Origin: Octopus sinensis
Taxonomy: Eukaryota
DNA length: 64,000 nt
Direction: 5' to 3'
Assembly: GCF_006345805.1 (NCBI RefSeq)
Contig: NW_021835999.1
Span: forward strand, 124,001-188,000
The position numbers and the translations under genes were made by a program. This document shows positions 1 to 32,524 of the stretch, piece after piece (within the stretch, counting starts at the first letter, position 1; the number at the start of each line of letters is the position of its first letter). The notes under the pieces are model-generated. The model was not told the DNA's origin, did no database searches, and saw only the letters and a list, made by a program, of their open reading frames with translations.

Positions 1-410
1 CAACTTATTGGCGTACAGTCACACTTATTGTATAGTCTACTCTGTGAGATCCTGGATGGCCAGGAAATTCCAGATATGTTTTTTAGATGATTCATGTAAA
101 ACGAGTCGAGCCTCCCCAATTCCTCATTTGTTGTTCTCCATGTCCCAGAGTTGTATAAGAGGATTGGTTTGATAAATGTGTTGTATAGCATTATTCTTTG
201 TTTTTTGTTATTCCCTTTCCGTTATGGCCATAGGTTTTTCAGCCTGTTTAATGCCGCGTTTGGCAACATTTTTCCTCATATGATATCCCCACTGTCTCCT
301 AATAGAGAGCCGAGTTTATTAGTGTTTCTCTATTTCTCTTCGACTGGGTTATTCATTCATATTATTTCTGTCCATTCTGTTTTTTCCCTGTTCACGTAGA
401 GAAATTATTA
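1..410 (-). pseudogene. RTE-type non-LTR retrotransposon 3' RT fragment (copy A)
   Basis: Same sequence as 29311-29720, whose minus strand reads LYNTFIKPILLYNSGTW...WRLFGHILRLD, homologous to the C-terminus of the RTE ORF at 24431-27370. Confidence 0.8.
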
Positions 411-659
411 CCAAATATATCTGGTGAATTCTTTTGGTTGGGGTCATTCTGAGTGGGAAATCATGCCGATTTTAGAACACATAAGTTAATTATGTCTAGT
501 TTGAAATCTCATTGTTGATTAAACTTTATTTCGTTGTCTCTACAAAATAAAATCATTACATGTGTGATACATTAGTTTGATCTATTGATTAGCGTCGACT
601 TTATTTATTTTATTTATTTATTAGGACCAAAAACACTGTCATACTCATAATTAACTATT

Positions 660-2299
660 TCAGGTGATCCCAGTCTCTTTTAAAAACCTTCGCATCTTTT
701 CTCTGTATTCTACAGCGCATTGTCTAGGACAGGGGTGAAATTCCAATAATTTCAATAATTCAATTTGAAATTCCAATGGCGCATTCTCAATCGAAACAGT
801 ATGTGGTACTGCAGTTAATTGAAGTTTGAGTTCAATTTTTTTAGTTTCGTTAAATCGCTCTTCAAATTGTTTCAAAATATAATCGAATATAGTATTAAAT
901 GTATTTGGTGTAAGATCGTCATAATTAATTATTTTGTCATCAATGAGATTTTTGACTTTTTGAAAATGAAATAATTCATTTTTTTATGTGAATCTTCAGT
1001 AGGCGGCATTTATCCATAAAATCGTTAATTTTTTTATACATTCGGCAAATTGTTTGGTCTTCACCTTGCAAAGATATATTCAAATTATTGATATATGTGA
1101 GTACATCAACCGGAAATGCTAAGTCAATTAAGAATTTTTTTTTAATCCAAAAGACACTCTTTTTGCTTTGATGAGTAAAAGTTTGATATTTCTTTTCGTA
1201 AATCAAGCACACGACATGTTGTTTCACCTTGTGAAGCCATCGAACTTGTGCATGGTATAAAATGTCTTCAGCAGATATTTCGAAACTGTCTATGTCTCAA
1301 TGCATTGTTTCGGATATATATAATAATCTGTTTTACTTCATTAAGTGTATCTTCAAATTTTTTCATTTGTGAACAAAGTGCTTGTTGGTGAATAATACAA
1401 TGTACACCAATAACTGATTTATTGTTATACTCTTCTGAGACATATTCAGTTAGGCGTGCAACAAATCCTTGTTTTCTACCCAACATTGCTGGTGCGCCAT
1501 CTGTGCATATTCCTCTTAGACATGTCATGTCCAATTTGAATTCCAAACAACATTGTTTAACTATTTAAAATATATCTTGACCCCGTACATTTCCAGGTAG
1601 TGACTTCATGGATAGAAAATTCTCATGTATTTCAAAATCGAAGGATAGAGTACGAATAAATATGATCAGCTGAGCAGAATCACATATATCATTCGACTCA
1701 TCAATGGCAAGTGAAAATAATGTAGTTTGAGAATTTAATTTTTGTAGGAGTGATAGATTAAGATGCTCGGCAATATGAAACTGTCGGCGCTGAATTGTGT
1801 CACGTGAAAGTGGAATTGCTTCAAAGTTATGCTCCTTGTCGGGATCAATGCATTTAACTGATTCCATGATACATCTTTTCACAAGTTTGCAGTCTAAAAA
1901 AGGTTTTCCAGCAGATCCAAGGATATGAGCAACTCGAAAGGATGCTTCAACTCTTGCATTTGCCACATTTAAAAGTTTTTAAACATTTTTTTTGTTGTCT
2001 TAATTTGTATTTCAAATTTTCGACGGAATCTTTTCTTGAACACTTGGACTTGACAACTGGGTGGTCTAAATGTCTTTGAAAATGTTGTTTAGCATTGTCC
2101 CGTTTAATAGTTTTCACAATCTCATGGCACAATAAGCATTGCATGCTATTGTTGTCTGTTTCGACTACGAAGTATTCACTTTCCCAGTTGATATTAAATT
2201 TTTTTTTTCTTCATTAAAAGAACGTCGTCTTTTAACAGGTAATGACATAAATAAATTAAGCCGTTTATGATAATTCGCTAGAAAGTTTACAATCTCCAT
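660..2299 (-). pseudogene. hAT transposase remnant (GTF2IRD2/EPM2AIP1/SPIN-like), frameshifted and truncated, copy A
   Basis: Successive minus-strand ORFs: QCLLC..H BED-like finger, FSLAIDESNDICDSAQL, ICTDGAPAM, VHCIIHQQALC. Confidence 0.9.
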
Positions 2300-2840
2300 T
2301 TGAATATTGTCAATTTTTTTTGATATTTGTATATGCTAGATTGATTCCCATACTGTTAATCCGTTACCAATTGTCGGTTTAATGTATTGGGTGTATAGAG
2401 ATTCTAATCCGTAAGTTCCTTTGGCATCTTTAAGTTTCCAAGAAATGTTTTAAGAAAGTTTAGTTTCTTACTGCATTTTGTCAACACGTTTTCCGTATGG
2501 GGAGTAGAGGTTAGAAAGGTGTCAAAGGTGATCCCTTGTATTTTTAGAGTTTTATTTTGAGGAATTGATTTCCCTTTCATGGTCACATTTATCGACAAAT
2601 TCCCCAGTCTTTTGTTAGTTGTGAAAAAGATTAGCTCAGACTTTTCCGGGCTTGCTTTCAACAGATCGGCATTGAGACATATACACATGTTATTTATATT
2701 TTTCTGTAATCTTCTTGTAGCTTTGCTGACACATATTATATCATCCCTCGATGCAACGATTATATAATCCGCATATAATAGTAAAATGTCATTCTTTTTT
2801 TCAAGAAGAGGCATATCATTCAACATTAGGTTGAATAATA

Positions 2841-5170
2841 GGTATGCGGAAAGAAAGTCAAGCGGAAAAAACGTCAAGTGGAAAAAAAGTCAAGTCCGTA
2901 AGCGAAAAAAAGTCAAGTGGAAAAAAAGTCAAGTCGTCTTTGTTTACTTTATATTGTATCTTTTTCGCAATAATAGCAACTTTTAATTTTTAACAAATTT
3001 TTTCAATACTTGACTTTTTTTCCGCTTTACTTTTTTTCCATTTTTGAAATTTATTCCCTTATAAATTTTCGAAATTTAGCGCAAAACGGAAAAAAAGTCA
3101 AGTTCGTTAACGAAATTACGGACTGTAATTTCATTTAAATGTTCTGCCACAGCTAAGCAACACGTTGTGAAAATAAATTTTAAAAGCTTGGTTCAGAATA
3201 TCGGTTTTTTAAACTGATATCACTTGCAATTGTATGCGCAAACTTTTTTTCGTTCGCGTTAGCTTCTCGCCTGCCGAAATAGTTCGCTTCCTTTGTTTTA
3301 TCTATTCTGTTTCATTTCTTCCGGAAAATAAATCACATAAATTTTACAAAAATTCTTAGAGTAGTCCAGATTTTCTTTATTTTTAAAAATTTTTAAATAT
3401 TTAAAAAAGATTTTTATTAAACGTGATGAAAGGATTATTTAATTCGAATCAAAAGAATATTTAATATTCCATGCAATTGCTTGTAGGGTTTCTCCTATTG
3501 TCTTTTTTCTGTTTTGGCGATCCAGACATATATTTAGCAGCCTTTGTTGTCGATCGAGTGTACTCTTGTTTTTTCTTGTCGTAATTTTTCTTCCGATGGA
3601 ATCCTGGTCAATAATTGTTTTCGTCATTTTTTCTTCTTTTTGAAAAGAAGATATAATATTCCATATCGATGGATGACGATATCCCGTCAAATTGTATAAT
3701 TTATTGTTCCATCCTTCACAATAGTTGTTTGTTCTTTGATCATTATTGAGCGTGGCTTCATACACATTCCATAAAATTGGAGGGAACAATGGAGAAATGT
3801 GCTGTATTCTAACAGATAAAGGGTTTTCTTGTTTATTTAAGCAACGATAATAACCACGAACATATGTTCGATCAAAATAATCTACTATATATTTTGAATC
3901 TGGAACATCTTTTGGTATATTATCTATTAGGAATTCTATTCCTTCTTCCAGATCTTGAATGGGCAAAAACGCAAGAGCGTCTATCATAGCGCAAAAAATG
4001 TTGAAGTTAATATTTTCTTTATATTCTTTTACTAAATGCAATTCTTGAATTTTTCTCCAGGTTGACTGCCTTAGATGATAATAACATCCTCTAATATGTA
4101 TTCGTCTCCCAAATACTGCAAGGACAGCTCGAAATACCGAATCTTCAAAGTCTGCCATAATAGTTTCAAGACAAAATTCCAAATTCAAATTATGAATTGC
4201 ATTTTGAATAGTCTCAAAAAATTCTTCGTAAATCTTTCTTGATTTAGAAGGTAATATTCCATAAATAACTGTAATTGGACTGGAATTGAACTCAATTCTG
4301 ATAAAATATATTTGCTTGAATATGCATGGTGCCATAGAGAAATTTCCATCCATATACCATACTTTGGAATTTGCCAATAACGTTAAATTAGTATTGGTGC
4401 TGAATATTAAAAGTCTATCGTTTCTTCTTTGATTATCATAAATTAAAAAGTTTTCTGAATCCGGACCAAGAGTTGAAGTTAAAAATGATGGAATATCTTC
4501 TAGATCTAGAATATTTTTTGGAATATGTAGAGACAAGCGTTGATTTCTTATTGTTCGCTTGAAAGAATCTGCAGAAGGGAGAATAATTCTGGATGATGTA
4601 TCACATTGAGAAACAACATTTGAATAGATTTGTAAGGGATTCTCTTGGCTCTTTTTTTGCAAGAAGTTTTTGCCTTGTTGCACAACTTCGTCAGTTTTAT
4701 TTGAGTTTCGTCTAATTCGTGATTGTGAGAGGTTCCTTCTTTAGGAAACTCAAAGTTATGATCTGTTCTTAAGCTTCCTCTGCATCCTTGCGAAGACTTT
4801 TTAACACAATTAAAAATTATATAATTTTTTGAAGTTCTTAAATTGATTTAGGAAAAGCGATTATTTTAAGACGGAAAATAAGTCAAGTTCGTTAACGAAA
4901 TTACGGACTTGACTTTTTTTCCGTTTTGCGCTAAATTTCGAAAATTTATAAGGGAATAAATTTCAAAAATGGAAAAAAAGTAAAGCGGAAAAAAAGTCAA
5001 GTATTGAAAAAAATTGTTAAAAATTAAAAGTTGCTATTATTGCGAAAAAGATACAATATAAAGTAAACAAAGACGACTTGACTTTTTTTCCACTTGACTT
5101 TTTTTCCGCTTACGGACTTGACTTTTTTTCCACTTGACGTTTTTTCCGCTTGACTTTCTTTCCTACAATC
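2841..5170 (-). mobile_element. Mutator-like (MULE) DNA transposon with ~255-bp TIRs and an 8-bp TSD
   Basis: TSD GAATAATA at 2833-2840 and 5171-5178; empty site in copy B (~32141). TIRs ~2848-3102 and ~4907-5163 are built from AAAAAAAGTCAAGT repeats. Confidence 0.95.
3439..4830 (-). CDS. MULE transposase (FLYWCH/WRKY-like N-terminus in another frame, then DDE domain)
   Basis: Catalytic motifs YMDGNF, IMADFE, GCYYH, TNNYCEGWN. Upstream frame reads IFNCVKKSSQGCRGSL...SHNH; the frame changes near the A7 run at ~4650-4660. No upstream ATG found. Confidence 0.85.
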
Positions 5171-5525
5171 GAATAATAAAGGGGATAGGGGGAACCTTGT
5201 AGCACTCCATTCGGGGGATAGGGGGAAATCCTCAATTTATAAATGTACTAAGTCTCACAAATAACGATTTTAACTATTATAAAACCTTCTTATACCAAAA
5301 TTTAAAGTTTATCAATGACAATTTAAATTTTTTGGGGACTATTGGTTTGTATTTTTAAATCAGCTTTCATGGGAATTAATTTGAAAATGTTAGCAGGTAA
5401 AAGAGTGCGTGTTAAAAACATAGTTGGATTATTAAAAATATAATAAATATACTAGTTGTAGCCTTGATGTATTAAAGTTCTTTGAACTGCCGATTTAAGT
5501 AAAATAAATGCGGTTTTTCTTAGCC

Positions 5526-5533
5526 TATAAATA
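5526..5533 (+). promoter_or_regulatory. Candidate TATA box of the five-exon orphan gene
   Basis: TATAAATA begins 30 nt upstream of the ATG at 5556 and is conserved in copy B (32496-32503). Weak evidence in AT-rich DNA. Confidence 0.4.
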
Positions 5534-5555
5534 CCGATTTTACGAAAGATTATTA

Positions 5556-6123
5556 ATGTCGGCACAGAAGAATTGTGAATGCATGAGGATTCCATGTATT
5601 TGTGTAAAACAAGAATGCTCCCGTACTGAGTTTGAATTTATCTTGCCCAGGGGAAAAAACGACTGACAATGTATTGTCCTGTCAACAAAATGAAACACAA
5701 CCGATTAGATATAGTGATTTCAATAATCAAAGTTATTCGACTGGGTCGAATGATTTAAATAATTTCCAAAATTTGTATTCTCAGCAATCGAATCAGAATT
5801 TTCAACAACAGTCAAATCAAGCTTGGCAAAGAAAGCAAATTCGTTTATTATTTAAAATTATTTTGAGGTGTCATTGACTATTCAGACTTAACCGAAAAGG
5901 ATTTTAGCGAAGCATTCTTACCAAGTTTGGATTACAAAGTTGAAGAGAAACCAAATTCTCTTTGTAAGACCTTTTATAGTAAAAAATATAAAAAAGGTTA
6001 GTTTTTATCAGTTTTAAATTATATTTAGATAAGAAAGATGACCCGGGTAAATTTAATGATATTAATTAAACATATTTAGATGATCTTCCGACTTTCAGCC
6101 TTGATTGGCTTCTTGATGAATAA
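5556..6123 (+). CDS. Orphan protein, 149 aa, 5 exons (copy A): Cys-rich N-terminus, Q/N-rich middle, Lys-rich then acidic C-terminus ending DDLPTFSLDWLLDE
   Basis: GT-AG introns 5623-5650 (28 nt), 5843-5867 (25), 5997-6028 (32) and 6047-6079 (33), all phase 1. Splicing gives an open 450-nt frame from ATG to TAA. Confidence 0.8.
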
Positions 6124-6197
6124 TGGCTGTTTCTTCTTTGCTTTCTTTTCCTAATAAATGCTTTGACCTTTAATTAGTATTTACTTTGATGATTATA

Positions 6198-7012
6198 TGT
6201 CACCGTCCAGACCGGCCGGGGCGCCAGATCGGTCAGGTCAATTATCTAAATACAAAACAAATATTTTTCCTACAAAACATTTCATTGCAAAAAAATATTG
6301 ATAATAAAAAAATAAAATCTTATTAATAAAAAAGTTCTAAAAAGTTGAAAAGATTAGCATTAATCAATGGTTTTAGTTGAATTAACTCGAGACACTCTCG
6401 AAAAAATTAGGGAGTATTTGGAATCAGGCCACCTTGATGATTCCTTGAGTTCGGAAGAAAGGGCACGAATACGGAGATATGCCAAAAAATTTAGTTTCAA
6501 GGAGAACAACACCTACATTTCTAAAAATGGCTCAAAGTTGCGTTTTTTTTGTATCGAAGACACAGAACTTAAGAAACTACAAAACAAAGGCCTTTTGACC
6601 TCTTGTTCGGAACTGATTTGGAGAAACCAAATAAAAAACTAACAAATTCTGAGGTCGTGAAAAAAAGGAAAAAAGCCCTTGAAAATATTGTAAAATCGGG
6701 AGAAAAAATGAAAAGGCGGAGAAAATGGAAATATGATGAAGTTTAAAGTGGCGATGAAATTTTAATACGCCATGATGGGGATGCAAACCCGGGTTATAGA
6801 AAATACCCATTATACGACGAGATATCTGCACAAAAATATATTGTGAAAAATAGGGATCGAGAACTCGTAACGATAATTAATGAAGAGGATGAAAAAGATC
6901 AAAGGATACATATTAGCAGAGTAAAAACTTGTCGCCATACTTGTTGAATATATATTTGTGCACAAATTCTGGACTTCGGAACAAATGAAGGATTTTGTTA
7001 ATTGTTCAACTC
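6198..7012 (+). mobile_element. Ginger/gypsy-integrase-like element fragment, copy A only
   Basis: Begins with TGT exactly where A and B diverge. ORF 6367-6642 (RARIRRYAKKFSF) resembles the integrase N-terminal region seen at ~55600-55750. No catalytic core or second terminus found. Confidence 0.45.
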
Positions 7013-7499
7013 CAGAATCTATTGAAAATTCATGTAAATCGATTTAAAATCTACATCTAGATTATTCCCAGTCAGACAATTTGTTTCCAACTGCAAAGAG
7101 ATTCAATTTCAAAATCAACCCAATTGACAAAATTCAAGTTATTACAAAGCTATGAACAGGAGAAATATTTTATCGAATAATCGCGTTGAGATAGTTTTAA
7201 ATATTTTAATTTAACAGATAAAAAAATTTAAAAGGAAAATATCGACTGTACTAATGACTACACTAAAATTCTTTAGTCTTTTATTAATAAATATAAAATC
7301 CCTATAAAATCTTTTTTGTGGTTTTAATAAAATGAAATTAATTCAAGTTAATCCTAGTTCAAGGTTAATGTAACAAACTGCCCATAGGTATCGTATGGGC
7401 CATGTGAAATATTAAGTTTGAATACTTAATGCCTCGTATTTAACCTTCTCAGTCGCTTACCATTAATTTTCGATGCTACCGCAAGCAGCGTAAATCGAT

Positions 7500-8150
7500 T
7501 TAGCGCGATCGTTCTCAACCTGCTATCGACAGAACCGGTGACAGACGACAAAAAATTTAACGTTTCGAATGATGGCTATAAATTGATATTTACCGACATT
7601 GATGTTTACAGTAAATATGCAATCGATAAAACAGCTAAAAATAAATCTCCACCGTTTAAACTAAACGGATGAATAAAAAATGAACTTTCATCAATCAATT
7701 GAGTTTTAAGGACTTGCTTATAAGATGCGAATGTAGATTGATGGAATGGATTTTGTATTAGGGTTGTCATAAAAGGGACTCCTAAATACTTCCATGAGGG
7801 ATATGTTTCAATATTTCCTATTCCTGTTTTTAGTGTTGAAATAACATTTCCACGTGTTAAGTTCAGTTCCTGAGGAATAAGTGTCCGTATTGCTAATTAG
7901 CTTACTTGTGACATACATGTAACTGTATGTACTTAGCTGCATTGAAAGACAAAAATATTCGACCTAAGATAGGTTTAAAAAATAAAGAGGTTAAGAGTTT
8001 GTCAAGACATTATCTAATCCAAATGCAAAATCTTGACAGAAAGTGTAGAAGTTAGGTTTTTCCTTGCTGAATTTGATTTGCTTCCAAGCACACTGAGCTA
8101 TAAATTTACTGGGGTCCTTGAAGATGTCATATTTATGCAGGAGACATACT
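7500..8150 (-). pseudogene. Heavily decayed non-LTR RT fragment (also at ~39350-39990)
   Basis: Only LSFNAAK and WKYLGVPF motifs are recognisable among stop codons. Confidence 0.35.
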
Positions 8151-8367
8151 TTTTCAAACAGTAAAATTAATTGCTTTTAATACTTTTATGATAATTATGA
8201 ATTTAAGGATTTTTTATAACTAGAGAGATCCTGTTATTCTTGTATGTTCATTAGTTTGAGTTCTTTTATAAAATTCAGAAATTATTTAAAAATTAAATTA
8301 TGTTTTATTATGTATAATTCAATATGTTGATTTAAATAAAAAAATTTAAATATGATCGCACGTTAGT

Positions 8368-8668
8368 ATGGTCAGTGACGAGTTGAAAATCTCTCCTGGA
8401 TTCGTTTTCAGAGAACTAAGATCCCGTATAACCCAATAAAATGACCTTAGGTCTCCTTGGAACACCTCGACTCAGCCCTGGTGCAGCCGTCTACATGTCT
8501 GCTGTCCTGGAAGTCCTTTCGGAGTCAATAATTAAATCTGCAGGCAACTTTGCCATCGAAGCCAGCTCTGAATATATCACCCTCGATCACATCGTCGCCT
8601 CCATCAGAGCTGATCCTGACATGTTTCGATATTTCACCGAGAAAATTATTCCAAACTATTTTAAATGA
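8368..8668 (+). CDS. Short, tailless, divergent histone H2A (H2A.Z-like features), 91 aa, 2 exons (copy A)
   Basis: A 25-nt intron at 8426-8450 joins MVSDELKISPGFVFRELRS to RLLGTPRLSPGAAVYMSAVLEVLSESIIKSAGN...ITLDHIVASIRADPDM, which aligns to the H2A histone fold (AAVY..AVLE, AGN, H...IR.D). Confidence 0.88.
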
Positions 8669-9089
8669 CATTATTAATATTTTTTGTTATCCGGTTGGAT
8701 TAGCTGTAGGTCTGCCTCTATTCTTACATCTGAGAGGGTAGGCAGCCTTCCTAGTAAGGACTGATGAGTAAGTTTAGATGTAGTAGTTAAGGTGTACTAG
8801 TTTTTACAGATTTTGAGTTTAGTCATGTGTAAAATATTTTAATTGATTTGTTCAGCTCATTAAAAATGGCTATTTTTAGAAACACCTAAAATGTGCGTTT
8901 TAAAATGGGGCAAATTGCTTTATTAATTTTTGAGTAAAATTGATTTTTTGGGTGATAAACAAATCGAAATCGGTAAATTTCGTAAATATGATTTACTGGA
9001 AATGATTTTTCGATTGTAAAAAATTGACTTCAAATGTTAAAAAAATTACAAAAACGAAATATCAAAAAGTGTTAATTAAGTGAATTTAT

Positions 9090-9523
9090 CATAACTTATT
9101 TAACTGATGGCGATCCAGTTTCCCCTCACTATTGCTTGGGACACGTTCTGGAGGAGCCATCTCGTCTCCAGAGGATTGTGTGTTCTCAGGGTCTTGAGAC
9201 GTCCAATACACACGCCCAGACGGGATGACTATCTTTCCGTTTTTGGAAGGAAAGCCTCTCGTATGGGATTCAACATGTTCCGACTTCTTGTCCAAGACAA
9301 ATATGTTGGAAAGTGCCTGCAATGCTGGCACAGCTGCGGATAGAGCAGAGGACATCAAGAAGAAGAAATATGATGGGCTCACCGATCGCTACGTTTTCCG
9401 GCCGATTGCCGTCGAAACCCTGGGATCGATTGGGAAGGAGTCGTTGCGCTTCCTCATGTGTATTGGACGTCTCAAGACCCTGAGAACACACAATCCTCTG
9501 GAGACGAGATGGCTCCTCCAAAA
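9090..9523. mobile_element. CRE-clade retrotransposon 3' fragment with internal inversion (also 40925-41355)
   Basis: Plus strand RPDGMTIFPFLEGKPLVWDSTCSD...IAVET (restriction-like endonuclease, RLE). Minus strand AIVRGN terminus. 64-bp inverted repeat at 9149-9212 / 9457-9520. Confidence 0.85.
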
Positions 9524-9787
9524 CGAAATATTAGTCGGTAAACTCGCAATAAAATGAATTAAAAATGTTTTCTTTTACAAAAATACTTTTTGAAATTCTG
9601 GATAGTCATTTTATCACAAATTCAAACATTTAACATTGTTCTGTCTTAATCGAAAGTCTGTTTCTATTGCGAGGAGATTACTTGTTTGCTTCCCCAAACA
9701 TCCTTATGTTTGACGATGTTTCTGCCTCTTCCAGGGTTTAGCAGGGTGATTCCCTGGGCCCTGTGTTTTTTGCTTTGGGCGTTAATA

Positions 9788-10995
9788 CAGTACGACCCCG
9801 GTTTGGGGCAGACCCCATGGGTGGGGCACCCTCGGGTTTTGGGGCACCCCCGCTTTTAGGGGCAGTTTTTGAAAACAGTAAATTTTTCATTCTATTATTT
9901 ATTTTTGATGACCCCGGTTTGGGGCACTTATTTAATTTATTTAATTACAAAATGTTAGTTTATTTATTAATTATTAATTAATACTATTATTTCACGTGTT
10001 TATTTTGACTTTAGTATGGTTCGTAAAAAGAATTCAAAGATTAATTATGAAACAAAAATTAAAATCGCTAAAGATATAAAACATGGTCAATTTTCAGAAA
10101 GAGATCTTGCTAAAAAGTATAAAACGAGCAAAGGTATCTTTTTTAACTAATTATTAATTACAGGTACTATTTCTCGCATTAAACAAAATTTTGTTTATTA
10201 TTTTGACGCGGGATTAACTGAATCCGATAGAATCAAGGAATCACATGATCCAAATAATGAATTAGATAGATTAGTTTTTGAAACTTTTCTACGTCTGAGA
10301 GATGAATTTCTTCCAATTTCTGGAACTATCTTAAAACTGATTGCAAAAAAATTATCTAAAAAGATAAATTATGAATCATTTAAGGCATCAAATGGATGGC
10401 TAGACCGGTTCAAGAAAAGACACGAGTTGCTATTTAAAACTATAAGTGGAGAAAAGAATTCATCTGACCTTTCTACGGTTTCCAATTTTTTTGCTGATTA
10501 TGACAACTGTTTGGAAACTGTAGGAAGTGAAACTGTAGGAAGTGACAACTGTTTGGAAACTGTAGGAAGTGAAAATGAGGACAAAATTACTTATGATGGA
10601 TATGAATCTAAAAAATCATCAATTAAAGAAATCATAAACATCGTGAATTCTCTAGAAGATAATATTTTCAGTACATGTCCACAATTTTTGAAAATCTACT
10701 ACGAATTTAGAAAAACCTATCAGGAGAACTGAAAAAAAACCAATTCGGTGAGAAAATTACTGATTACTTTTAATAGTATTTTTTGTTGGATTTATTAAAA
10801 TTTTTAAATTTTATTAAGAAAGGACTATGTTAGAATTTTTATTAATATTAAATAATTTTAATTTATAGTCTAAAATGCAATAAAAATCTATTGAGGAGAA
10901 AATAAAAGCAAAAAATCTTTACCCTCGCATTTTGGGGCACCCCCGCTTTTTGGGGCACTATGATAAAAATGCTGCCCCAAACCGGGGTCGTACTG
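9788..10995 (+). mobile_element. pogo-family element, internally deleted, copy A only
   Basis: Perfect 23-bp TIR CAGTACGACCCCGGTTTGGGGCA, TA TSD, empty site in copy B (gcgttaatagtatcg). Confidence 0.95.
10016..10732 (+). CDS. pogo transposase DNA-binding half (HTH_psq + CENP-B HTH), no DDE domain, 2 exons
   Basis: A 30-nt intron at 10134-10163 removes an in-frame stop. FKASNGWLDRFKKRH motif present. The C-terminal KITDYF motif is one base out of frame at an A run. Confidence 0.8.
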
Positions 10996-11989
10996 TAGTA
11001 TCGTCCACTCTGTCCGATCCCCTATTAACATTTGGTACCTGAATGACGCAACGTTTTCGACGATTTCCGCTTTATTCTCCTATAAATGTGGAAAAATCCG
11101 AAATCGTGAACATTAATTTAAATCCTGTTCACTGCCGCAACTTCCATTTGCCGAAGAATTTTTTCCGACGTCCGAATTACACCCAAACCGAATCTGACGA
11201 TTCTCGGTGCTTCCATGGATCCTTCTGCTCTTGAAGGCTCCCTGTCTGAAAAAATTTCCAATCTATCCAAAGTGACTGAGAAGCTCAAAGACATCGACCC
11301 TCGTGTGGCTTTTTTCCTTCTCCGAAAATAATTTTCCACTTTTTTTAAACGCTGAGATGTGCGCCCTGTTTAAACAGGCATGACCTTCTTTCCGACTTTG
11401 ACCATATTTTCAGCCTCGGTACGAGCTCACTCTGCAATCTGGACCCAGACATTTTTACCTGTGCGCTGGGCAACCTTAGTATGAGATCTTATTCCGATCT
11501 GGCCCTTTCGGTATTCCTATCCTCTCACTCTTCTTCTCGTTCTCTCTCAGACATCGTTCTCAGAAACCACTTTGAACGCAAATTGTCTGAGGATACTTGG
11601 CTGCTTGTGGTCTGTAGGAAGCCCGGTTTGGTTCTATTCAGCGGCAGTGGAACGAGATCTCTCGTCGGGGGACTTTAGAAGCACTGGCCTCCGTCTATCA
11701 AGAGTAAGACACGATTCCAGAGAGTCATCCTGGCTCTTGACAATAATCGGACTGGGACGACAATGTCCGAGGGTCAGAGTTCTAGAGGTCCTTTTTCGGT
11801 AGGCATTAAGTGCCTCCTGAGCGTTTCCATATCCGATTGGAAGTTCCAATTGACGTTGTGGACCCCATAACGCCACGCTAAGACCGGAAAGGTAAGAGAT
11901 CCCCTTTTTAAACTGTGTCGTGCCAGAAGAACTCGTCGCCTCGCGGGCAGAGGACGGTAATGAGAATTGACCCCAGCTGGAAACTAGCC

Positions 11990-12060
11990 TCCTTCGGATT
12001 CGAACCCACGACTCTCCAGATCCATTATCCATAGCTAAAGCTTCGTGAGACCATTAGTTA
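11990..12060 (-). promoter_or_regulatory. tRNA-derived Pol III A/B-box-like sequence (possible SINE head; also ~42612-42682)
   Basis: Minus strand GTGGGTTCGAATCC (B box) with TAGCTATGGATAA / TAACTAATGGT upstream. No complete cloverleaf. Confidence 0.35.
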
Positions 12061-12388
12061 AATTATCTCAAATTTGACATTTATTAATTTAGCAGAATAT
12101 AATTTTTAAATATCTAAGTTGGATTCAGACAGTGACGGGATTTGTCGACATATCTGTTTCAAGGTCTTTGGTTAAGTTTGATATTAATTTACAATGACTA
12201 CATGAACGGGACTTTTACATTCCATACGAGACAGAGTAGTGGGAAAAAACAAACAAAATTGCAACATTTTTAGAAAAAAGAAAACATGTCATTTCATATT
12301 AATGTCTCGATAATTAAATACGAATATGTTTATATATAACCAATGACTGCCCAATACAATATTTTAATACAATATCTCAATAAGGTTA

Positions 12389-13075
12389 CCGTATTTTCTC
12401 GATTTTAACGCGTAATTGAAAATAACACGAAAGTAATTTCGGGCCAAAAACATCTGGAAAAACACAGTAATCGAATATAGTGCGCACTTAAAATGCGGGT
12501 TGCTTGCGTTTCAGATTTTTTTAAACGCAGTCAAAGTAAGGTGGTACAAGCGTGTTGAGTGACGTGTATTACCTTATCTTAACGAGGGTATGGCGACTTA
12601 AACGATCTTAAAGAGACAATCAATTATGTGCGTTGAACTTGTGTAAAGGATCAAAGGTATCACATGTGTTTAAACTACAAGTGTTCATCAAGAGTTCGGC
12701 AGATCAAAAGTCAATTGGGTTTCATCAGCGTTTCCTATATTTCGATGTTAGAGTGGTGCTTTGTCCTCATCTTGATTATGGACTCCATCAGTTTATGTTT
12801 GTAGTCCTCCATCATCTTTAGGACAATTGACGTTGTCTTTCTTACAGATAGGTTCTTTCGTTGTATAAACTTATAGCACCAACATGCAGACGATTTGAAG
12901 CCAGAATTCTTGTTGGTTTTATTCGTGATTTTCAGGTCAGGATACGCAGCTTGACTGTGCTGATGCTACACCCTCTAGCTCTTCTTTCAGCAATCGTTTT
13001 AAGACGTCCTTCCTCTAACTCTGAAAACATTGCTTTTTTTCCACGTCCTGATGCTTTTGCTATTACTATTTTAAA
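12389..13075 (-). pseudogene. Decayed Tc2/pogo-type transposon (also ~43010-43700)
   Basis: TA|CCGTATTTTCTCG terminus at 12389. Minus strand FSELEE..KTIAERRARG, GFKSSACWCYKFIQRKNLSVRKTT, IGNADETQLTFDLP. Confidence 0.7.
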
Positions 13076-13180
13076 ATTCAAAGTTGGAATGTGCACAATG
13101 TCTGTGAGTCAAAGTGAGTTTGACAATGCTTTTTTCAATCAATTTGTAATTTATTTTAGTTATTGATTATAACACGCACC

Positions 13181-13763
13181 TGTTCTCAAATGACCCGAGA
13201 GAAACATGATTCCTACTACGATTACAATAATGCAAAATGGTCGGCTTATAAGAAATACGTTGATACGAAACTTTCCACATTCTATCCGGGACTCAATTCC
13301 CTCGATATTACCGAATTGAGTGCCAAAAGGTTCCCCCTATCCCCCGTATGCAATAAGAAATTAAACTTTCTTAAAAAATTTCTTGGAAACTTGGAAGACG
13401 CCAAAGGAACTTACGGATTAGAGTCTCTATACACCAAATACATTAAACCGACAATTGGTTACGGATGTACAGTATGGGGAATCAATCTAGCATATAGAAA
13501 TTTTAAAAAAATCGACTGAGATTGGAGATTGTAAACCTCCTAGCAAATGCCACGGGAAACAAAATTCCACCAAAGGGACTAGAAGAAATCATGAAAGAAA
13601 ACGGTGGAGACCTCAGGAAAAAGTCCATGTTCGGGATCCCCGACCTCTTAGACAAAGCGCTGTAAAATACAGAGAAAAGATGCGAAGGTTTCTAAAAGAG
13701 GCTAGGATTACCTGAAATAGTTAATTATGGTTATGACGGTGTTTTTGTTCCTAATAAATAAAT
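13181..13763 (+). mobile_element. Internally deleted LINE copy related to the 2345-5240 fragment (also ~43811-44395)
   Basis: QGSPLSP-coding sequence fused directly to CNKKLNFLK..YIKPTIGYGCTVWG. Flanked by TTATAACA(C/T)GCACC repeats, a TSD-like pair. Confidence 0.6.
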
Positions 13764-14465
13764 TATAACATGCACCCCATCTATTGGAATTAATTATATA
13801 GCAAAAATCTGCGTAGCTCTTTTTTCAGCAATTGTTTTAATAACTTGCTCGTTTTGATGCCATGTTGCTTTTAAAATGTCCAAAATTGAACTGATATATG
13901 ATGAACTGAGACGAGTACGAGGCGAAAGGGGGGGCAGTAACAATCATAGCTTTCCATCGGCTTTATGAGATGAAGTAAAAACAAAAATTTATAATTTCCG
14001 AAAATTAACCAATCAAAGAAATTGAAGGCAATACAAAATGGCCGTTTCCATTTTGCATTATCGACGGTACATGGTGTTTTTATGCTGTGACTGGAAAAAT
14101 ACAGGCGTTGACTATTTTTCTAGATCGCAATTCTACTTTCCAGCTTATTAATTCAGGATTGTGATGTTAGTGATACTTTACAATCTTTAATATGCGTTTA
14201 TTTTAAATTCAAAGTTGGAAATTGCACAATGTCTGTGCGTCAAAGTGAGTTTAACAATGCTTTGTTCAATCAAATTTGTAAATTATTTTAATTATAGCAC
14301 GCACCCCATCTGTAGGAATAATTTATTCACAAACAAAGTCCAGAATATACAACATTGACCATTTCATGTATGATAATGCCCTCAAGACTGTAGTGACAGT
14401 CAGTGCCGATTAAATATATCTCTTTCATGGACACACGTACATATTTATGGAACAAAACAACTCAT

Positions 14466-15730
14466 TTATTGAATATAGTCATCAAAAAATGCATAATCTT
14501 CCAAGTAATTAAAATTCTGAGTATAATCACTGGTAGGGTGAGTGTTGAGGGGAGGAAAGGAATCCCGGAAAGTCTGAATTCCGACATTATAGGCAGTCTC
14601 AACCCCCGGACAGACCGGCGGGAGAGGAGGAGGGTGTCTGGAATGTCCCTTCCGTTTGCAATGCATTCCAAGGGACTGTCTTAGGCCGAACATTTTGCCG
14701 CAGACGTGGCAGACGTAGAGAGGACAGGAGTGGGGGGTGGAGGGGTACAGTCTGTACTTACACCGAGGACAGTACTCTGAACTGTGGACACGAGCAAAGT
14801 GCTGTTGTTACAACAAATTAACACTTTTTTGAGCAGACCAAATGTGGAGTATTTTTTGTCGCAGGTTTTACCGTCATTGCCCGGACAGCAGTACTGGAAT
14901 TGGTCCCCACTTTCTTCATTCGTCCATATTTTTTCCTATATTTACTCATTCCGCCTACCATGCACGACTTGTGCACAATCCGCATGTGCATTTGCAGGGC
15001 TCCGAAGTGGGCACAGAATCGGGAACACATAGGACACGTGTTTAGACATCCCCTCAGACCTTCCACGGGTGGATACACATCAATCATACACAACTAATTT
15101 GAACAATTTATTAAAAATTAACTAGCAACCAAATTTATTAAAAAAGAAAAATTAGTTAAATCCATAAATCTCGGATTGATGGAATTCTCTTAAATAAATG
15201 AAGGGGAGTGGAACAAACTGGATGGTTTTTCATATGAGCTATAGCTGTACACAGATGGGTAGTATGTGAAGCAATCCTCCAGAATTGTATCACGTCGTAT
15301 TGAATTGAAGGCATTTTTAATGTCAATTTTGACGATTACAAAAGGAGTGTTCTCGTTCTTTTCGGTGAATATTCGGACAGCATGAACTGCCGCTTCACAC
15401 ATGCAATTACATCGGCAACGGTACGTTTGGAATATATCAAGTCTAAGTCGAATACACGCTCCGATGCGAACAGTTTCGTCCTCCAAAAGTAGACTGTTGG
15501 ACGCCAACAAAAGAGCATTTAGCTAATCTCTCGAGTGGGGCTGGCAGGCGCAGTTCAAGGAAGCTAACTGCATTTGATCGGCTTGCGAGCGAAGACTCTC
15601 CAACAGGTGTAAACACTTGATGACATCCCAACTCTTCTGTATAAAAAGACTCTTCGGAAGGTCAAGTCCGAGCAATCTCCAGGCGTGAACAGCAACAGGG
15701 TATTTCGTAAGCTCGCCGAGTTTGGGTGAG
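14466..15730 (-). pseudogene. Rearranged RLE-type (CRE-like) retrotransposon fragments with C2H2 fingers (also ~45098-46360)
   Basis: CHVCGKMF...MHCKRKGH and CPMCSRFC..LQMHMRIVH fingers. VKIDIKNAFNSIRRD and LLLEDETVRIGACIRL match the CRE ORFs but in permuted order. Confidence 0.65.
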
Positions 15731-16404
15731 TTTATAAGAACAGAGCAAACAAAATTTTCAGCAAAATATTTTAAGTAAAGACTTAGAATATTTTGTTATT
15801 AACCCAATATTTTTTCTATAATAAACTTAAAAAACTCAACTGATTCGCCTTAAAAATGCCCTTATGCAGGCTTCGCCCGCGGAGTAACTAAAAAATATTT
15901 AGTTTTCTTTATAAAAATTTAAAAATCAGTAATTTTTGTATCAATTTTTCGTACCCATTTGAAACGGTGCAACAAGAAAACAGTTCTGCATCACACTCAC
16001 TTGAGGAGAAAGCACTCGTTTTGTTAAACTCATTCAAATTAGCAAATGATAGTTGCCTTTTAAAGAAATATTCAAACTTTCTACATTCGGACAAATAGAT
16101 TGTATCTCGAAATTGAAACCCCCTAGTATGACTTTCTAACCACCACTAGAGACACACCCTAACATTTAGTAAATAGCTTTGCGGATTGTAACGCCCATTC
16201 TTCAACATTAATGGAGCAGATAATTGCTTTCACTGCGTTTAATTTTGAGTTCGTTTCCAGATGAGAGGGACTTTAACTTTCACCAGTAAAACAAAGCTGA
16301 AAAACCTTCATGACCGTCCTTTTTATAGGTTCTGTGCCAGTTTCCTTGATTCCGGTCTAAGTGTTCAGTTACAAAACAGTCAAGCATAAGAATTTTAGCG
16401 AAAT

Positions 16405-19400
16405 TATCGAAATAAAAGTTAGTAAGAAAAAAGTAAGCAATTGGGTGGCTAAGGGAATTGTCGAGAGCCTGAGGGTCAGCTCAACGATGCCGCGCTGCGT
16501 ATTGAGTGGCAGTTTCCGCGGAGCACAGCAACCGAGATTCGCTGGAACAGCCAGCTCGTCTCCCTCCGGTCGTTTGTTTTTGTGGAGATTTTTCTACCAA
16601 TGGCGGTGAGGAGTTGAGTCGCAGCCTTTCCGACGATTCCAGAGGTTTCGAAGGCGAGGGGGGCAAACTCAAAAGCGTCCGAAATACACCGGTATTTCAT
16701 CATCTTTGTCTCTTCAGCCAGCGCACTGGCGGAACCCGGGTCTGCGACAGTCCTGGGAAGCATTGTCGCCGAAAAAGAGTCGACACACGTGGCATCCCAA
16801 ACCAGGGACTTGCCTTCCCTAAAAGGAAAGGTCGTCATCCCGTCGGGACGCTTGCCGTCGCTCCGGGAAAGGCCGACTGGCTCTAGGGTGGAAGGGAAAC
16901 CAGCCGACTCTAGAGCCCTCCTCACAACGTCATTCAGATGAGTGTGACGGGGAATTCTCCCGGCACTCTTCTTACACGACAAGGCGTGCAAGCCGTTTGA
17001 CAAAATTGAGGACCCGCACCGGCAAGGGTGGGGCTGGCAGATGTCCAAACCCAATCGTAAGCTGATCCCAATTTGCAAGGATTCGTCGTCCAGTAGTAAC
17101 CCCGTACTAGGAGTGGGGAGAGCTTTGAGCAAGTCACCCGTGTGCGGCTGACAGGCGCAGTTAAGGGTGGCCAGCTGGAGTTGGTCCGACTTGGAGCGAA
17201 GTTTTCGTAATGTGTTCAAGCAGAGAATTTCGTCCCAGCCCCTTTGAACTGAAGGGATCGTGGGAAAATCAAGGTCGAGTGAGCACCACGTACGGCATGC
17301 AGATGAGAATTCCGAGAGCTCATTAAGTTCGAGAGAGGGAAGTAGAACTGAGCAAACGGAATTCCTGGAAGCCGACATGGATGAGAGATAGCAGGGTAGG
17401 GCCAGGTCCGCACAAGGGCGGATCCCGATCCCCCCGAAGCGAGTTGGTAAACTGGCACGGGTAAAACCGTCACCAGTGAACCTCAAATTGAGGTGGAATG
17501 TTAGCGATTGGTGGACAAGATTATCGATTCTGGATAATGAGTCTGTGGCAGCGAAACACGGGGAGGAACGGAGAATATAGGTCAGTCTGGGGACGAAAAG
17601 AAAGTTCTTCAACAAGAAAAACGCAAGATGCGAGCCAAGCCCACGGATCCGATCAGTGAGTAGTTTAATTTCGTCCCATTTAGACGATAAGGCATTTTCT
17701 ATGCCATCAGCGGAAATTGGAGAGCCCAAGATAACTAGATCGCTGGTGGGCGTTAGCCTTAACCCAACGATCAGGCTGCTGAGAGAGGAGAATGTGTTGC
17801 GGAGAGCGGCGGGGGCAAGAGAAATGTTTACGAGTTCGCATTTTTCGCCGTTAAGAGATAGTCCGATCTTGGAGAAACCGGAAGTGATTCTCTTAACGTC
17901 TTCCATAACGACCTCTGTAGGTCCACCAATCGTCACGTCGTCCAGGTACCAGAAGTTAACAGTGGAAGAAAGGTTCCGTGCAATGTGGTCAACAGAGAGG
18001 GCAAACAGCAATGGGCCCAGTGGGTCACCCTGCTGAATGCCGCATTCTGACATGATGATCTGATCATGGATCAGAAGGCAGCTTGGGGCAGAGTATGCCA
18101 GCTTTACAATTGGGAAGAGAACGGGGCAACGTGCCGAGACCACTTCGAGCAGATGGTCCCGGCGGACGCAGTTGAATGCGTTGCTGACGTCCAGCTTCAC
18201 GATGAACTTGCAGTCTTCTGGCTTTGACTGGACAAGTTGGCGAGTGCCGTGCGCGAGAATTTCGCAGGCACCTTGGACGCCGACACCGTACTGGAAAGGG
18301 AGAAACTCCAGACTCAGGGGGGGAACCACCCTGCGGGACATTATCTTGGCCAAGAGTCTCCTGAAAACGTTACCGACCGCAATGGGCCTCACGCCACCAT
18401 CGGCTTTCGACAGGGCAATGAGGCCAGCAGAGAAAAGAAGATCTCTGGCGACGGTTGGAATCTCGCCCGAGACAATGTGCGAACAAAGACGAGTGACAGA
18501 AGATAGCAGGTCTTTTCCGGATTCGTGGGTTAATGGGCTCAGGAGATCGCGTAGGTGGATGGGCTTTACACCGTCTATCCCGCCGCTGCTACTGGGCGCA
18601 AAAGACCCGAGAGCGGCCGAAACCTCAGACGAGGTTATCGGGTTGGACGGAGCCGAAACTAACGTCGGTGTTGCACGGAGGTCGGTGGGAGCTTGGGGGT
18701 GTTTGCTGCGGAGTTGATTCAGGACAGCATCACACCGAGGAGCCACAGAGGAGTTGGATGAAATTGCGCGCACTGCTCCAGAGATATCGCCCTGGAGGAG
18801 TTTGCTTCGGACTGCCCGGGAAAAGCGCAATTCTGCGAGACCGGGCCGTTTTGAAGGTGCCTCCTTACAAGGGGGCGTAAGAGAGACAGACAGCCAATCA
18901 GAGTTGAACTCTGAGTGGACGTAAGATGTACAACGGTCCTTAATCCGCTGGGCAGAAGAAACGTGATTAGCAGCGCATGAGCGCATAGGAGAAGAATTGA
19001 GGCAAACGGGAAAGAAAGAGAACAGCTTGAACCAAGGGTCAGGAGCGCTGGAAGCCAGCGCCTGGTCGATCAAGGCTGCGAGGGACTTGGCCACAGTGGG
19101 TCTGGCCGATTTTGGAATCCTTACTGGGATGAATGATTCGCTTCGGAAAGCAGATAAGGATTTGAGGAATTGAGAAGGGGTAAAATGGCTCCCGGGAATT
19201 GGGGATATGCGTTTGGGTAGACCAAGGCAACTCGGGCACTTCCAGCATTGGATAACGGCCGAGCTGGCCCTGGAGAGCCCGACGCAGGATAGATGGAAGT
19301 ACAGATCGCAAGAGGAGCACAAGCGGCCCTTCTTGCGGGAATTGGATGATTTACAAGAGGAACAAGTTGCCATGTAAAGAATGATGCAATAAAGCGAAAG

Positions 19401-22091: not shown

Positions 22092-22580
22092 ATGCACGGT
22101 CTGAGGAAAATTCTACTTCGATACCACCCCTTCTATTTTCCTCTTAATTTTATTAATTTGCTTGGAATTTCGTTTATCACGTTGGGGGTTGTTTTTATTC
22201 TGATCTATTTTGGACTCGAAAAAAGCTTTTCCACAGAAATGACTATTAAAAAAATATTAGAAATGTTTGGAACTTGTCTCCTCATTGCCGGTGGCTTGGC
22301 AATTTTTGTCGTATTTGTGACCATTATATATAAATCTGAGAAAAGTCATATCTCTCAAATGGCCAATCCAAAAATGTTGGAAAATGAAAAAGAGTTGACT
22401 AACAACATGAAACTAAAAATGTATCAAAGTTTTGTTCATTTTGCTTCTCGGTGGCTTGTGCCAGTCCCTAAAGAACCGAACTGGCATCTCAAAATTAAAA
22501 TAAGAGAGGCAAATGAAAAGATCAAAAATCTCCACGAAAACCCCGAATATGTCGTGGAAACAGTTCAGCTCGAACGTTAA
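22092..22580 (+). CDS. Orphan 162-aa protein with two predicted transmembrane helices
   Basis: Uninterrupted ATG-TAA ORF in AT-rich DNA. Hydrophobic stretches FINLLGISFITLGVVFILIYFGL and FGTCLLIAGGLAIFVVFVTIIY. Confidence 0.6.
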   Translation: MHGLRKILLRYHPFYFPLNFINLLGISFITLGVVFILIYFGLEKSFSTEMTIKKILEMFGTCLLIAGGLAIFVVFVTIIYKSEKSHISQMANPKMLENEKELTNNMKLKMYQSFVHFASRWLVPVPKEPNWHLKIKIREANEKIKNLHENPEYVVETVQLER

Positions 22581-29224: not shown

Positions 29225-29720
29225 TCCTTTTAATTTTTTATAACCAAAATGTCCCTCGGTCTAACCTCAGGATGTGTCCAAAAAGTCTCCAGCAAGAGCT
29301 AATAATCTCGCAACTTATTGGCGTACAGTCACACTTATTGTATAGTCTACTCTGTGAGATCCTGGATGGCCAGGAAATTCCAGATATGTTTTTTAGATGA
29401 TTCATGTAAAACGAGTCGAGCCTCCCCAATTCCTCATTTGTTGTTCTCCATGTCCCAGAGTTGTATAAGAGGATTGGTTTGATAAATGTGTTGTATAGCA
29501 TTATTCTTTGTTTTTTGTTATTCCCTTTCCGTTATGGCCATAGGTTTTTCAGCCTGTTTAATGCCGCGTTTGGCAACATTTTTCCTCATATGATATCCCC
29601 ACTGTCTCCTAATAGAGAGCCGAGTTTATTAGTGTTTCTCTATTTCTCTTCGACTGGGTTATTCATTCATATTATTTCTGTCCATTCTGTTTTTTCCCTG
29701 TTCACGTAGAGAAATTATTA
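29225..29720 (-). pseudogene. RTE-type non-LTR retrotransposon 3' RT fragment (copy B)
   Basis: ORF 29238-29501: KPILLYNSGTW..LDSF...ISWP.RISQ..LYNKC...WRLFGHILRLD. Ends in an AT-rich tail just upstream of NAA10. Confidence 0.8.
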
Positions 29721-29969
29721 CCAAATATATCTGGTGAATTCTTTTGGTTGGGGTCATTCTGAGTGGGAAATCATGCCGATTTTAGAACACATAAGTTAAT
29801 TATGTCTAGTTTGAAATCTCATTGTTGATTAAACTTTATTTCGTTGTCTCTACAAAATAAAATCATTACATGTGTGATACATTAGTTTGATCTATTGATT
29901 AGCGTCGACTTTATTTATTTTATTTATTTATTAGGACCAAAAACACTGTCATACTCATAATTAACTATT

Positions 29970-31608
29970 TCAGGTGATCCCAGTCTCTTTTAAAAACCTT
30001 CGCATCTTTTCTCTGTATTCTACAGCGCATTGTCTAGGACAGGGGTGAAATTCCAATAATTTCAATAATTCAATTTGAAATTCCAATGGCGCATTCTCAA
30101 TCGAAACAGTATGTGGTACTGCAGTTAATTGAAGTTTGAGTTCAATTTTTTTAGTTTCGTTAAATCGCTCTTCAAATTGTTTCAAAATATAATCGAATAT
30201 AGTATTAAATGTATTTGGTGTAAGATCGTCATAATTAATTATTTTGTCATCAATGAGATTTTTGACTTTTTGAAAATGAAATAATTCATTTTTTATGTGA
30301 ATCTTCAGTAGGCGGCATTTATCCATAAAATCGTTAATTTTTTTATACATTCGGCAAATTGTTTGGTCTTCACCTTGCAAAGATATATTCAAATTATTGA
30401 TATATGTGAGTACATCAACCGGAAATGCTAAGTCAATTAAGAATTTTTTTTAATCCAAAAGACACTCTTTTTGCTTTGATGAGTAAAAGTTTGATATTTC
30501 TTTTCGTAAATCAAGCACACGACATGTTGTTTCACCTTGTGAAGCCATCGAACTTGTGCATGGTATAAAATGTCTTCAGCAGATATTTCGAAACTGTCTA
30601 TGTCTCAATGCATTGTTTCGGATATATATAATAATCTGTTTTACTTCATTAAGTGTATCTTCAAATTTTTTCATTTGTGAACAAAGTGCTTGTTGGTGAA
30701 TAATACAATGTACACCAATAACTGATTTATTGTTATACTCTTCTGAGACATATTCAGTTAGGCGTGCAACAAATCCTTGTTTTCTACCCAACATTGCTGG
30801 TGCGCCATCTGTGCATATTCCTCTTAGACATGTCATGTCCAATTTGAATTCCAAACAACATTGTTTAACTATTTAAAATATATCTTGACCCCGTACATTT
30901 CCAGGTAGTGACTTCATGGATAGAAAATTCTCATGTATTTCAAAATCGAAGGATAGAGTACGAATAAATATGATCAGCTGAGCAGAATCACATATATCAT
31001 TCGACTCATCAATGGCAAGTGAAAATAATGTAGTTTGAGAATTTAATTTTTGTAGGAGTGATAGATTAAGATGCTCGGCAATATGAAACTGTCGGCGCTG
31101 AATTGTGTCACGTGAAAGTGGAATTGCTTCAAAGTTATGCTCCTTGTCGGGATCAATGCATTTAACTGATTCCATGATACATCTTTTCACAAGTTTTCAG
31201 TCTAAAAAAGGTTTTCCAGCAGATCCAAGGATATGAGCAACTCGAAAGGATGCTTCAACTCTTGCATTTGCCACATTTAAAAGTTTTTAAACATTTTTTT
31301 TGTTGTCTTAATTTGTATTTCAAATTTTCGACGGAATCTTTTCTTGAACACTTGGACTTGACAACTGGGTGGTCTAAATGTCTTTGAAAATGTTGTTTAG
31401 CATTGTCCCGTTTAATAGTTTTCACAATCTCATGGCACAATAAGCATTGCATGCTATTGTTGTCTGTTTCGACTACGAAGTATTCACTTTCCCAGTTGAT
31501 ATTAAATTTTCTTTTTTCTTCATTAAAAGAACGTCGTCTTTTAACAGGTAATGACATAAATAAATTAAGCCGTTTATGATAATTCGCTAGAAAGTTTACA
31601 ATCTCCAT
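29970..31608 (-). pseudogene. hAT transposase remnant, copy B
   Basis: Same motifs as copy A (ORFs 31255-31608, 30873-31190, 30576-30854, 29970-30392). Confidence 0.9.
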
Positions 31609-32524
31609 TTGAATATTGTCAATTTTTTTTGATATTTGTATATGCTAGATTGATTCCCATACTGTTAATCCGTTACCAATTGTCGGTTTAATGTATTGGG
31701 TGTATAGAGATTCTAATCCGTAAGTTCCTTTGGCATCTTTAAGTTTCCAAGAAATGCTTTAAGAAAGTTTAGTTTCTTACTGCATTTTGTCAACACGTTT
31801 TCCGTATGGGGAGTAGAGGTTAGAAAGGTGTCAAAGGTGATCCCTAGTATTTTTAGAGTTTTATTTTGAGGAATTGATTTCCCTTTCATGGTCACATTTA
31901 TCGACAAATTCCCCAGTCTTTTGTTAGTTGTGAAAAAAATTAGCTCAGACTTTTCCGGGCTTGCTTTCAACAGATCGCCATTGAGACATATACACATGTT
32001 ATTTATATTTTTCTGTAATCTTCTTGTAGCTTTGCTGACACATATTATATCATCCCTCGATGCAACGATTATATAATCCGCATATAATAGTAAAATGTCA
32101 TTCTTTTTTTCAAGAAGAGGCATATCATTTAACATTAGGTTGAATAATAAAGGGGATAGGGGGAACCTTGTGGCACTCCATTCGGGGGATAGGGGGAAAT
32201 CCTCAATTTATAAATGTACTAAGTCTCACAAATAACGATTTTAACTATTATAAAACCTTCTTATACCAAAATTTAAAGTTTATCAATGACAATTTAAATT
32301 CTTTGGGACTATTGGTTTGTATTTTTAAATCAGCTTTCATGGGAATTAATTTGAAAATGTTAGCAGGTAAAAGAGTGCGTGTTAAAAACATAGTTGGATT
32401 ATTAAAAATATAATAAATATACTAGTTGTAGCCTTGATGTATTAAAGTTCTTTGAACTGCCGATTTAAGTAAAATAAATGCGGTTTTTCTTAGCCTATAA
32501 ATACGATTTTACGAAAGATTATTA

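Follow-up and report, generated by a model that had tools for sequence, protein, structure and literature searches.

A candidate tailless, net-acidic short H2A encoded with a 25-nt intron in two copies of a segmental duplication

Two copies of a short two-exon gene, one on each unit of a segmental duplication, lie in the window (the whole 64-kb stretch of DNA analyzed); the positions of both copies and of the other elements discussed below are collected in Table 1. Removing the 25-nt intron yields exactly the 91-aa spliced protein proposed by the first-pass annotation, and a recount of its charged residues (10 K/R vs. 11 D/E, net charge -1, pI 5.75) agrees with the near-neutral charge reported there. 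The coding sequence has a GC content of 45%, compared to 25-31% in its flanks. The upstream block contains a TATAAAA at 8267-8273; TATA-like motifs are common by chance at 25% GC. No match to the Rfam histone 3' element was recovered, either at the gathering score or at E<=10, and tblastn detected no other histone genes (H2B, H3, H4) in the 64-kb window. With neither a stem-loop nor neighboring histone genes, the gene fits a replacement-type variant rather than a replication-coupled histone. A divergent H2B partner was considered on the minus strand upstream of the gene, where 7606-7770 shows a weak similarity ("SYKQVLK"), and failed on further comparison.

Table 1. Positions of the H2A-like gene copies, the duplication units and other elements in the 64-kb window.
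Feature	Position	Strand	Description
Copy A, proximal upstream block	8234-8367	+	identical in both copies; putative promoter and 5'UTR
Copy A, exon 1	8368-8425	+	58 nt, ATG at 8368; codons 1-19 plus 1 nt; read from the sequence; short N-terminal segment and helix alpha1 (MVSDELKISPGFVFRELRS plus first base of R20)
Copy A, intron	8426-8450	+	25 nt, phase-1, GT..AG, GTATAACCCAATAAAATGACCTTAG
Copy A, exon 2	8451-8668	+	218 nt including TGA; encodes L1, alpha2, L2, alpha3 and a short alphaC
Copy B, exon 1	40210-40267	+	
Copy B, intron	40268-40292	+	same 25 nt as copy A
Copy B, exon 2	40293-40510	+	one synonymous difference, AGC>AGT, Ser28
Duplication unit A	1-16413		self-megablast; carries copy A
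Duplication unit B	29311-47062		self-megablast; carries copy B
MULE-type DNA transposon	2848-5163		261-nt inverted repeats, 98.9% identity
Transposase ORF of the MULE-type transposon	3439-4683	-	414 aa
Inverted repeat arms	9144-9525		69 nt, 99% complementary, 244 nt apart; potential long hairpin
1.2-kb element	9776-11007		36-nt terminal inverted repeats
Non-LTR retroelement	16476-19373	-	intact-looking, 965 aa; reverse transcriptase
Claudin-like ORF	22092-22580	+	162 aa
Tandem array	33347-33870		period ~95 nt, copies 90-94% alike
Non-LTR retroelement	34140-37247	-	intact-looking, 1035 aa; reverse transcriptase
Zinc-finger ORF	57538-62881	-	very long, single-exon-like, 1638 + 141 aa

Units A and B are 98.5-99.7% identical and are interrupted by copy-specific transposon insertions; a genuine tandem duplication is one possible origin of this arrangement, and the serial assembly of two haplotypes is another. 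The MULE-type transposon is confined to unit A, with unit B contiguous at 32142-32149, indicating a recent insertion. The 1.2-kb element, ~1.1 kb downstream of the H2A-like gene, is also present in unit A only, and the opposing position of unit B (41618-41619) is contiguous. The inverted repeat arms sit within a retroelement 3'-end fragment ~480 nt downstream of the gene, while the tandem array occurs in unit B only.

A phmmer search of the PDB with the spliced protein recovered H2A.Z chains (E 5.6e-7, 72 ungapped columns). The relationship is also detected when splicing is not assumed, with exon 2 alone matching solved H2A chains at E 1.9e-5 and tblastn with H2A recovering exon 2 at 6.5e-7. 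An exhaustive HMMER search of 1.84 billion representative proteins gave 40 matches at E<1e-3, with 29-44% identity and no relative above 44%; 39 of these are H2A-type or carry an H2A-like domain (canonical H2A, H2A.Z, fused gene models and divergent forms), and the remaining one (P0014), a repeat protein of low complexity, has no H2A motif. A word-indexed protein search with the 91-aa protein found no match because it has no 5-mers in common with H2A. Scanning of metagenome contigs returned one ordinary H2A at 35% identity, and viral contigs (IMG/VR) returned nothing. None of ten distinct window proteins was present in an exact look-up of a 15-billion-protein collection, and missing orthologs or transcripts are therefore uninformative about expression.

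The score against Pfam Histone (PF00125) is below the gathering score (14 bits vs. a cut-off of 26.4; E 0.063), which reflects the extent of sequence drift. An AF2 model, built on an H2A alignment and hence leaning to the H2A fold, has a pLDDT of 87.3 and predicted helices at residues 10-20 (alpha1), 29-56 (alpha2), 64-73 (alpha3) and 75-85 (alphaC); the top Foldseek matches to this model are all nucleosomal H2A chains (TM 0.72-0.78). On sequence grounds the similarity goes beyond chance, and the homology of the 91-aa protein to H2A is real. Human H2A, H2A.Z, H2B, H3 and H4 served as references in these comparisons, and the H2A and H2A.Z stretches agree with database sequences. The H2A signature before alpha1, [AC]-G-L-x-F-P-V (PROSITE pattern), is not matched by the 91-aa protein, which reads D-E-L-K-I-S-P at this position.

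Another, tight group of proteins encountered in this work (P0007, P0012, P0029 and P0006) comes from GC-rich eukaryotes and has H2A-like domains that are rich in alanine and poor in arginine, frequently in pairs within one protein. AVLEV..SQ and RAD motifs occur both in these proteins and in the 91-aa protein. The four proteins make up a separate clade (100% support), the branch of which is long (2.6 changes per site). They are apparently another unexplored family of divergent H2A folds.

In the alignment, M1 and K91 match H2A residues 18 and 107, respectively, leaving the protein without a tail at either end and without the distal docking segment; the absence of the N-tail and the truncation of the docking domain at ~H2A residue 107 described in the first-pass annotation are thus upheld, as are all of the substitutions that it listed (E61>S, E64>K, E91>P, KKTR>SSEY, R29>F, R71>I and R81>D). 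Its statement that most of the acidic patch is lost needs to be narrowed. Loss has occurred, but at only three of the six positions (E56, E61, E64, D90, E91, E92), where S45, K48 and P75 are the replacements; E56 and D90 are kept, and E92 is kept as D (E40, D74 and D76 in the 91-aa protein). Basic residues still present are R32, R35, R42 and R88. Also kept are the alpha2 hydrophobic face, Y34, E40, the AGN motif and H66, with 8 of 11 nearly invariant H2A columns preserved.

We compared these changes with simulations in which an H2A or H2A.Z coding sequence diverged neutrally, with an AT bias, to the observed identity. The simulated sequences kept a mean of 4.6 of 11 basic residues (4/11 observed, P 0.49) and 16.6 of 24 hydrophobic residues (19/24 observed, P 0.18). 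Directed loss of basic residues and directed retention of the hydrophobic core were both rejected as explanations distinguishable from neutral change, and the substitution pattern is thus not evidence of directed change or of function.

The protein had also been called H2A.Z-like. Loop L1 does align gap-free to H2A.Z, with one gap against canonical H2A, and the label is appropriate for L1 length and the alpha1-L1 residues, but not for overall identity, the extended acidic patch or the docking region. Features common to H2A.Z and the 91-aa protein are the L1 length, SR in alpha1/L1, AAVY, and IT before alpha3. The residues that favor H2A.Z are restricted to alpha1-L1 (exon 1 and the first codons of exon 2), and an L1 of H2A.Z length is also found in some non-Z H2As among the matches. 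Identity is 24/72 (33%) to H2A.Z vs. 26/72 (36%) to H2A, and the top-ranked matches of exon 2 by itself are plant and canonical H2A. Where D/S extend the acidic patch of H2A.Z, the 91-aa protein has F78/R79, and it ends before the GGVIPHIH segment of H2A.Z, with neither the docking region nor the lysine-rich tail. In a maximum likelihood tree the 91-aa protein is placed alone, outside, with a branch length of 4.85 changes per site. The AU test accepts a grouping with H2A.Z (p 0.79) as readily as one with canonical H2A (p 0.80). We therefore set phylogeny aside as an arbiter between an H2A.Z and a canonical origin, as the free tree and the AU tests favor neither.

Based on these sequence features, the 91-aa protein is best described as a putative lineage-specific short/divergent H2A that is unusual in being both tailless and net acidic. 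As far as is known, the short H2A variants of mammals (H2A.B, H2A.L, H2A.P, H2A.Q) remain basic, whereas the 91-aa protein is net acidic (pI 5.75), ends earlier than they do (~residue 107) and has also lost the L2 KKTR; to our knowledge, there is no precedent for a net-acidic H2A in nucleosomes. The mammalian variants constitute a eutherian, X-linked, intronless clade whose members retain a tail at the N-terminus, rich in arginine in H2A.B and H2A.L, whereas the gene described here has an intron and its product has no such tail. Common to both are the missing C-terminal tail, the truncated docking domain and the reduced acidic patch, as well as a very long branch, multi-copy genes and lineage restriction (PMC7226823). 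The parallel with mammalian short H2As drawn in the earlier reading therefore stands for the C-terminal, docking and acidic-patch reductions, and the resemblance is one of analogy, not membership. Short H2A variants with a chromatin-opening effect are regarded as an innovation of eutherians (PMC7226823). Given a non-mammalian animal host with invertebrate-type transposons, descent from the eutherian clade is implausible, a judgment made apart from the tree, which included no short-H2A sequences. The independent derivation proposed earlier fits the finding of no close relative anywhere.

Oikopleura H2A.3 and H2A.4 offer a second comparison: they are orphan H2A paralogs without a stem-loop in a fast-evolving animal, and they diverge in L1, L2 and the docking domain, as here, but they are full-length and tailed and have documented stage-specific expression (PMC3156773). 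The best 60 PDB matches of the 91-aa protein are all H2A proteins, an H2A-type alphaC is predicted in the model, and Pfam reports only Histone, with no sequence signal for NC2alpha/DRAP1, NF-YC or CHRAC/POLE4. The latter are small, largely tail-less subunits of histone-fold heterodimers that function off the nucleosome, and they may provide a working model for the 91-aa protein.

We assign a probability of about one half to the reading that the gene is an intact, functional, lineage-specific, divergent short H2A. Neither copy has a stop, frameshift, lost start or lost splice site. Copies A (8368-8668) and B (40210-40510) differ at a single base (8476 C/T), which is synonymous, and the two copies thus encode an identical protein, as previously noted. 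This is also the sole difference between the copies over 446 nt (8234-8679, from 134 nt before the gene to 11 nt past it), vs. 12 differences in the flank at 8133-8233 and 10 at 8680-8806; the limits of this block were set post hoc, and gene conversion or a young duplication could also yield it. Indels account for ~1 in 6 of the differences between the copies (7/40 events), and there are none over the 72 aligned columns. Only 2-4% of simulated neutral lineages are stop-free at 35% identity, a proportion in which indels are not yet counted. The open reading frame, intact splice sites, freedom from indels, conserved block between the copies and elevated GC content of the coding sequence relative to its flanks argue against a decayed pseudogene. 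Copies A and B are too alike for dN/dS or a selection test.

A possible, if rather unlikely, alternative is that a once-functional divergent H2A variant is now represented by a silenced or never-expressed pair that is too young to have acquired lesions. Such a history would suit the transposon-laden neighborhood, the frame-shifted state of the neighboring long zinc-finger ORF and a residue-class pattern that is indistinguishable from neutral drift. It is harder to reconcile with two copies that are both lesion-free and with a 446-nt block that has one synonymous difference between flanks with 10-12 each, and divergence of this extent without lesions requires long-term selection.

The reading of an intact, functional short H2A also depends on the gene model, which would be wrong if the 25 nt were an unspliceable insertion breaking an intronless gene, or if the exons belonged to a larger gene. 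Introns of <30 nt are absent from nearly all animals, and an AG at 8365-8366 could act as an acceptor. Among animals, introns this short have been reported only for myxobolid myxozoans and Dicyema, in which the 5' signal is reduced to GTa and the 3' signal to a bare AG with a few upstream A (PMC13644364), and the median intron in Dicyema sp. is 27 bp (PMC6543705). The form of the 25-nt intron, which starts with GTA, ends with AG and has a run of A 8-11 nt ahead of the AG, matches these ultra-short introns (PMC13644364, PMC6543705). It contains an in-frame TAA, and the chance of GT..AG ends on a frame-restoring 25-nt segment is ~1% (a rough estimate based on base composition).

Homology provides a further line of evidence for the splice. 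The alignment to H2A.Z is ungapped and in register across the junction (72 columns), and the Smith-Waterman score to H2A.Z increases from 85 for exon 2 alone to 106 with exon 1 joined, a gain of 21 BLOSUM units that was matched by 2 of 5000 shuffled versions of exon 1 (P 0.0004); the gain against H2A is only 1. The in-register alpha1 homology of exon 1 thus supports splicing. With regard to a larger gene, an in-frame TGA is located 4 codons upstream of the ATG at 8368, and we found no histone-like coding sequence, whether a tail-like exon within 2 kb upstream or a docking continuation within 600 nt downstream; over this interval the description of the protein as tailless is sustained. We consider an error in the gene model to be very unlikely. 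If the gene is real, it would be a well-supported extra example of a 25-nt animal intron. The zinc-finger and claudin-like ORFs of the window were also examined for introns of this kind and gave only ambiguous candidates.

That the gene was carried by a virus or mobile element (e.g., a giant-virus histone or a captured gene) is highly improbable. The best structural matches include the H2A-like chain of Marseillevirus (TM 0.78), and a Pif1/Helitron-type fragment is present 1.8 kb upstream of copy B, but there is no relative in IMG/VR, the window has no viral genes, and the gene is without flanking terminal repeats. Furthermore, the copies reside within a 16-18 kb segmental duplication and are not separate insertions, and spliceosomal introns are rare in giant-virus genes. 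The least probable reading is that of an ordinary, sole H2A (or H2A.Z) in a very fast-evolving lineage: the probable host lineages, dicyemids and myxozoans, are fast-evolving, and the adjoining zinc-finger ORF is also without detectable homologs, but the missing tails, lost L2 anchors, negative charge and 4.85 branch far exceed the H2As recovered from 1.84 billion proteins, and there is no stem-loop or histone cluster in the 64-kb window.

If the gene is an intact, functional short H2A, its mRNA would be spliced from the two exons and translated, and the kept alpha2 hydrophobic face and AGN motif would permit head-to-tail pairing with an H2B-type partner, which the preservation of 8 of 11 nearly invariant columns makes plausible. 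In the 1997 work of Luger and coworkers, H2A R29, R42 and R77 reportedly anchor the three DNA sites of the dimer, and H2A residues ~105-119 are said to dock on H3-H4. Only R42 of these anchors survives in the 91-aa protein, and L2 is acidic or neutral. The resulting dimer would be without the H2A L2 and alpha1 DNA anchors and the H3-H4 contacts, and the lost anchors together with the missing distal docking segment suggest a weak grip on DNA at the outer turns and weak binding to the tetramer. This could have either of two outcomes: loose, under-wrapped nucleosomes, as H2A.B gives (PMC7226823), or a dimer off chromatin that ties up H2B. We infer both from the same features and favor neither.

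A broader and doubtful scenario is that a parasite with ultra-short introns (dicyemid/myxozoan) independently evolved a tailless, net-acidic short H2A that forms open nucleosomes or acts as an H2B-sequestering decoy, perhaps as part of a germline/soma-specific chromatin program. Chromatin diminution, which has been reported for dicyemid somatic cells (PMC6543705), is an example of a program that might use a short H2A. If true, the protein would have arisen in convergence with mammalian H2A.B/L/P and would be the most reduced H2A known, and such an independently derived H2A in a parasitic invertebrate would demonstrate that evolution has opened chromatin in this way more than once. It would also serve as a naturally occurring minimal H2A with which to determine the contacts that a histone dimer requires for entry into the nucleosome. 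If unexpressed, the gene would be a mere curiosity of a repeat-rich region.

The window as a whole is eukaryotic, AT-rich (37.8% GC) and transposon-laden, and its GC content and heavy repeat load resemble those of D. japonicum (36.7% GC, 49% repeats, LINE-rich; PMC6736024). Rfam and tRNA scans of the window gave no matches. The window's retroelements have best matches with identities of 45-64%. For the 965-aa retroelement protein, the closest named relative belongs to Octopus sinensis (64% identity), the host of D. japonicum, with the remaining named matches, other O. sinensis proteins included, at <=47%. Together with the intron form, these features make a dicyemid the likeliest source of the DNA. 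Octopus DNA itself would be expected to give a nearly identical retroelement match and octopus homologs of the zinc-finger ORF, and neither was obtained. Judged by these identities, there are hints of transposon exchange between parasite and host, if the source of the DNA is a dicyemid. A PHD finger match was found only in the 965-aa ORF, and a C-terminal segment was read as a putative restriction-like endonuclease.

The claudin-like ORF has a weak PMP-22/claudin match (E 5.8e-4, below the cut-off) that is confined to the C-terminal half of the family profile, and no exons were located upstream of it. The zinc-finger ORF encodes widely spaced C2H2-like fingers, and its 1638-aa part has no Pfam match and no homolog among 5.8 billion proteins. 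The frame of this ORF shifts at least 2 times near 62360-62520. One of these shifts resembles a missing A in an AAA run, and restoring the base gives a perfect finger (FRCKMCRFS...H...H), which suggests that the change of frame is either a long-read homopolymer error or a real frameshift.
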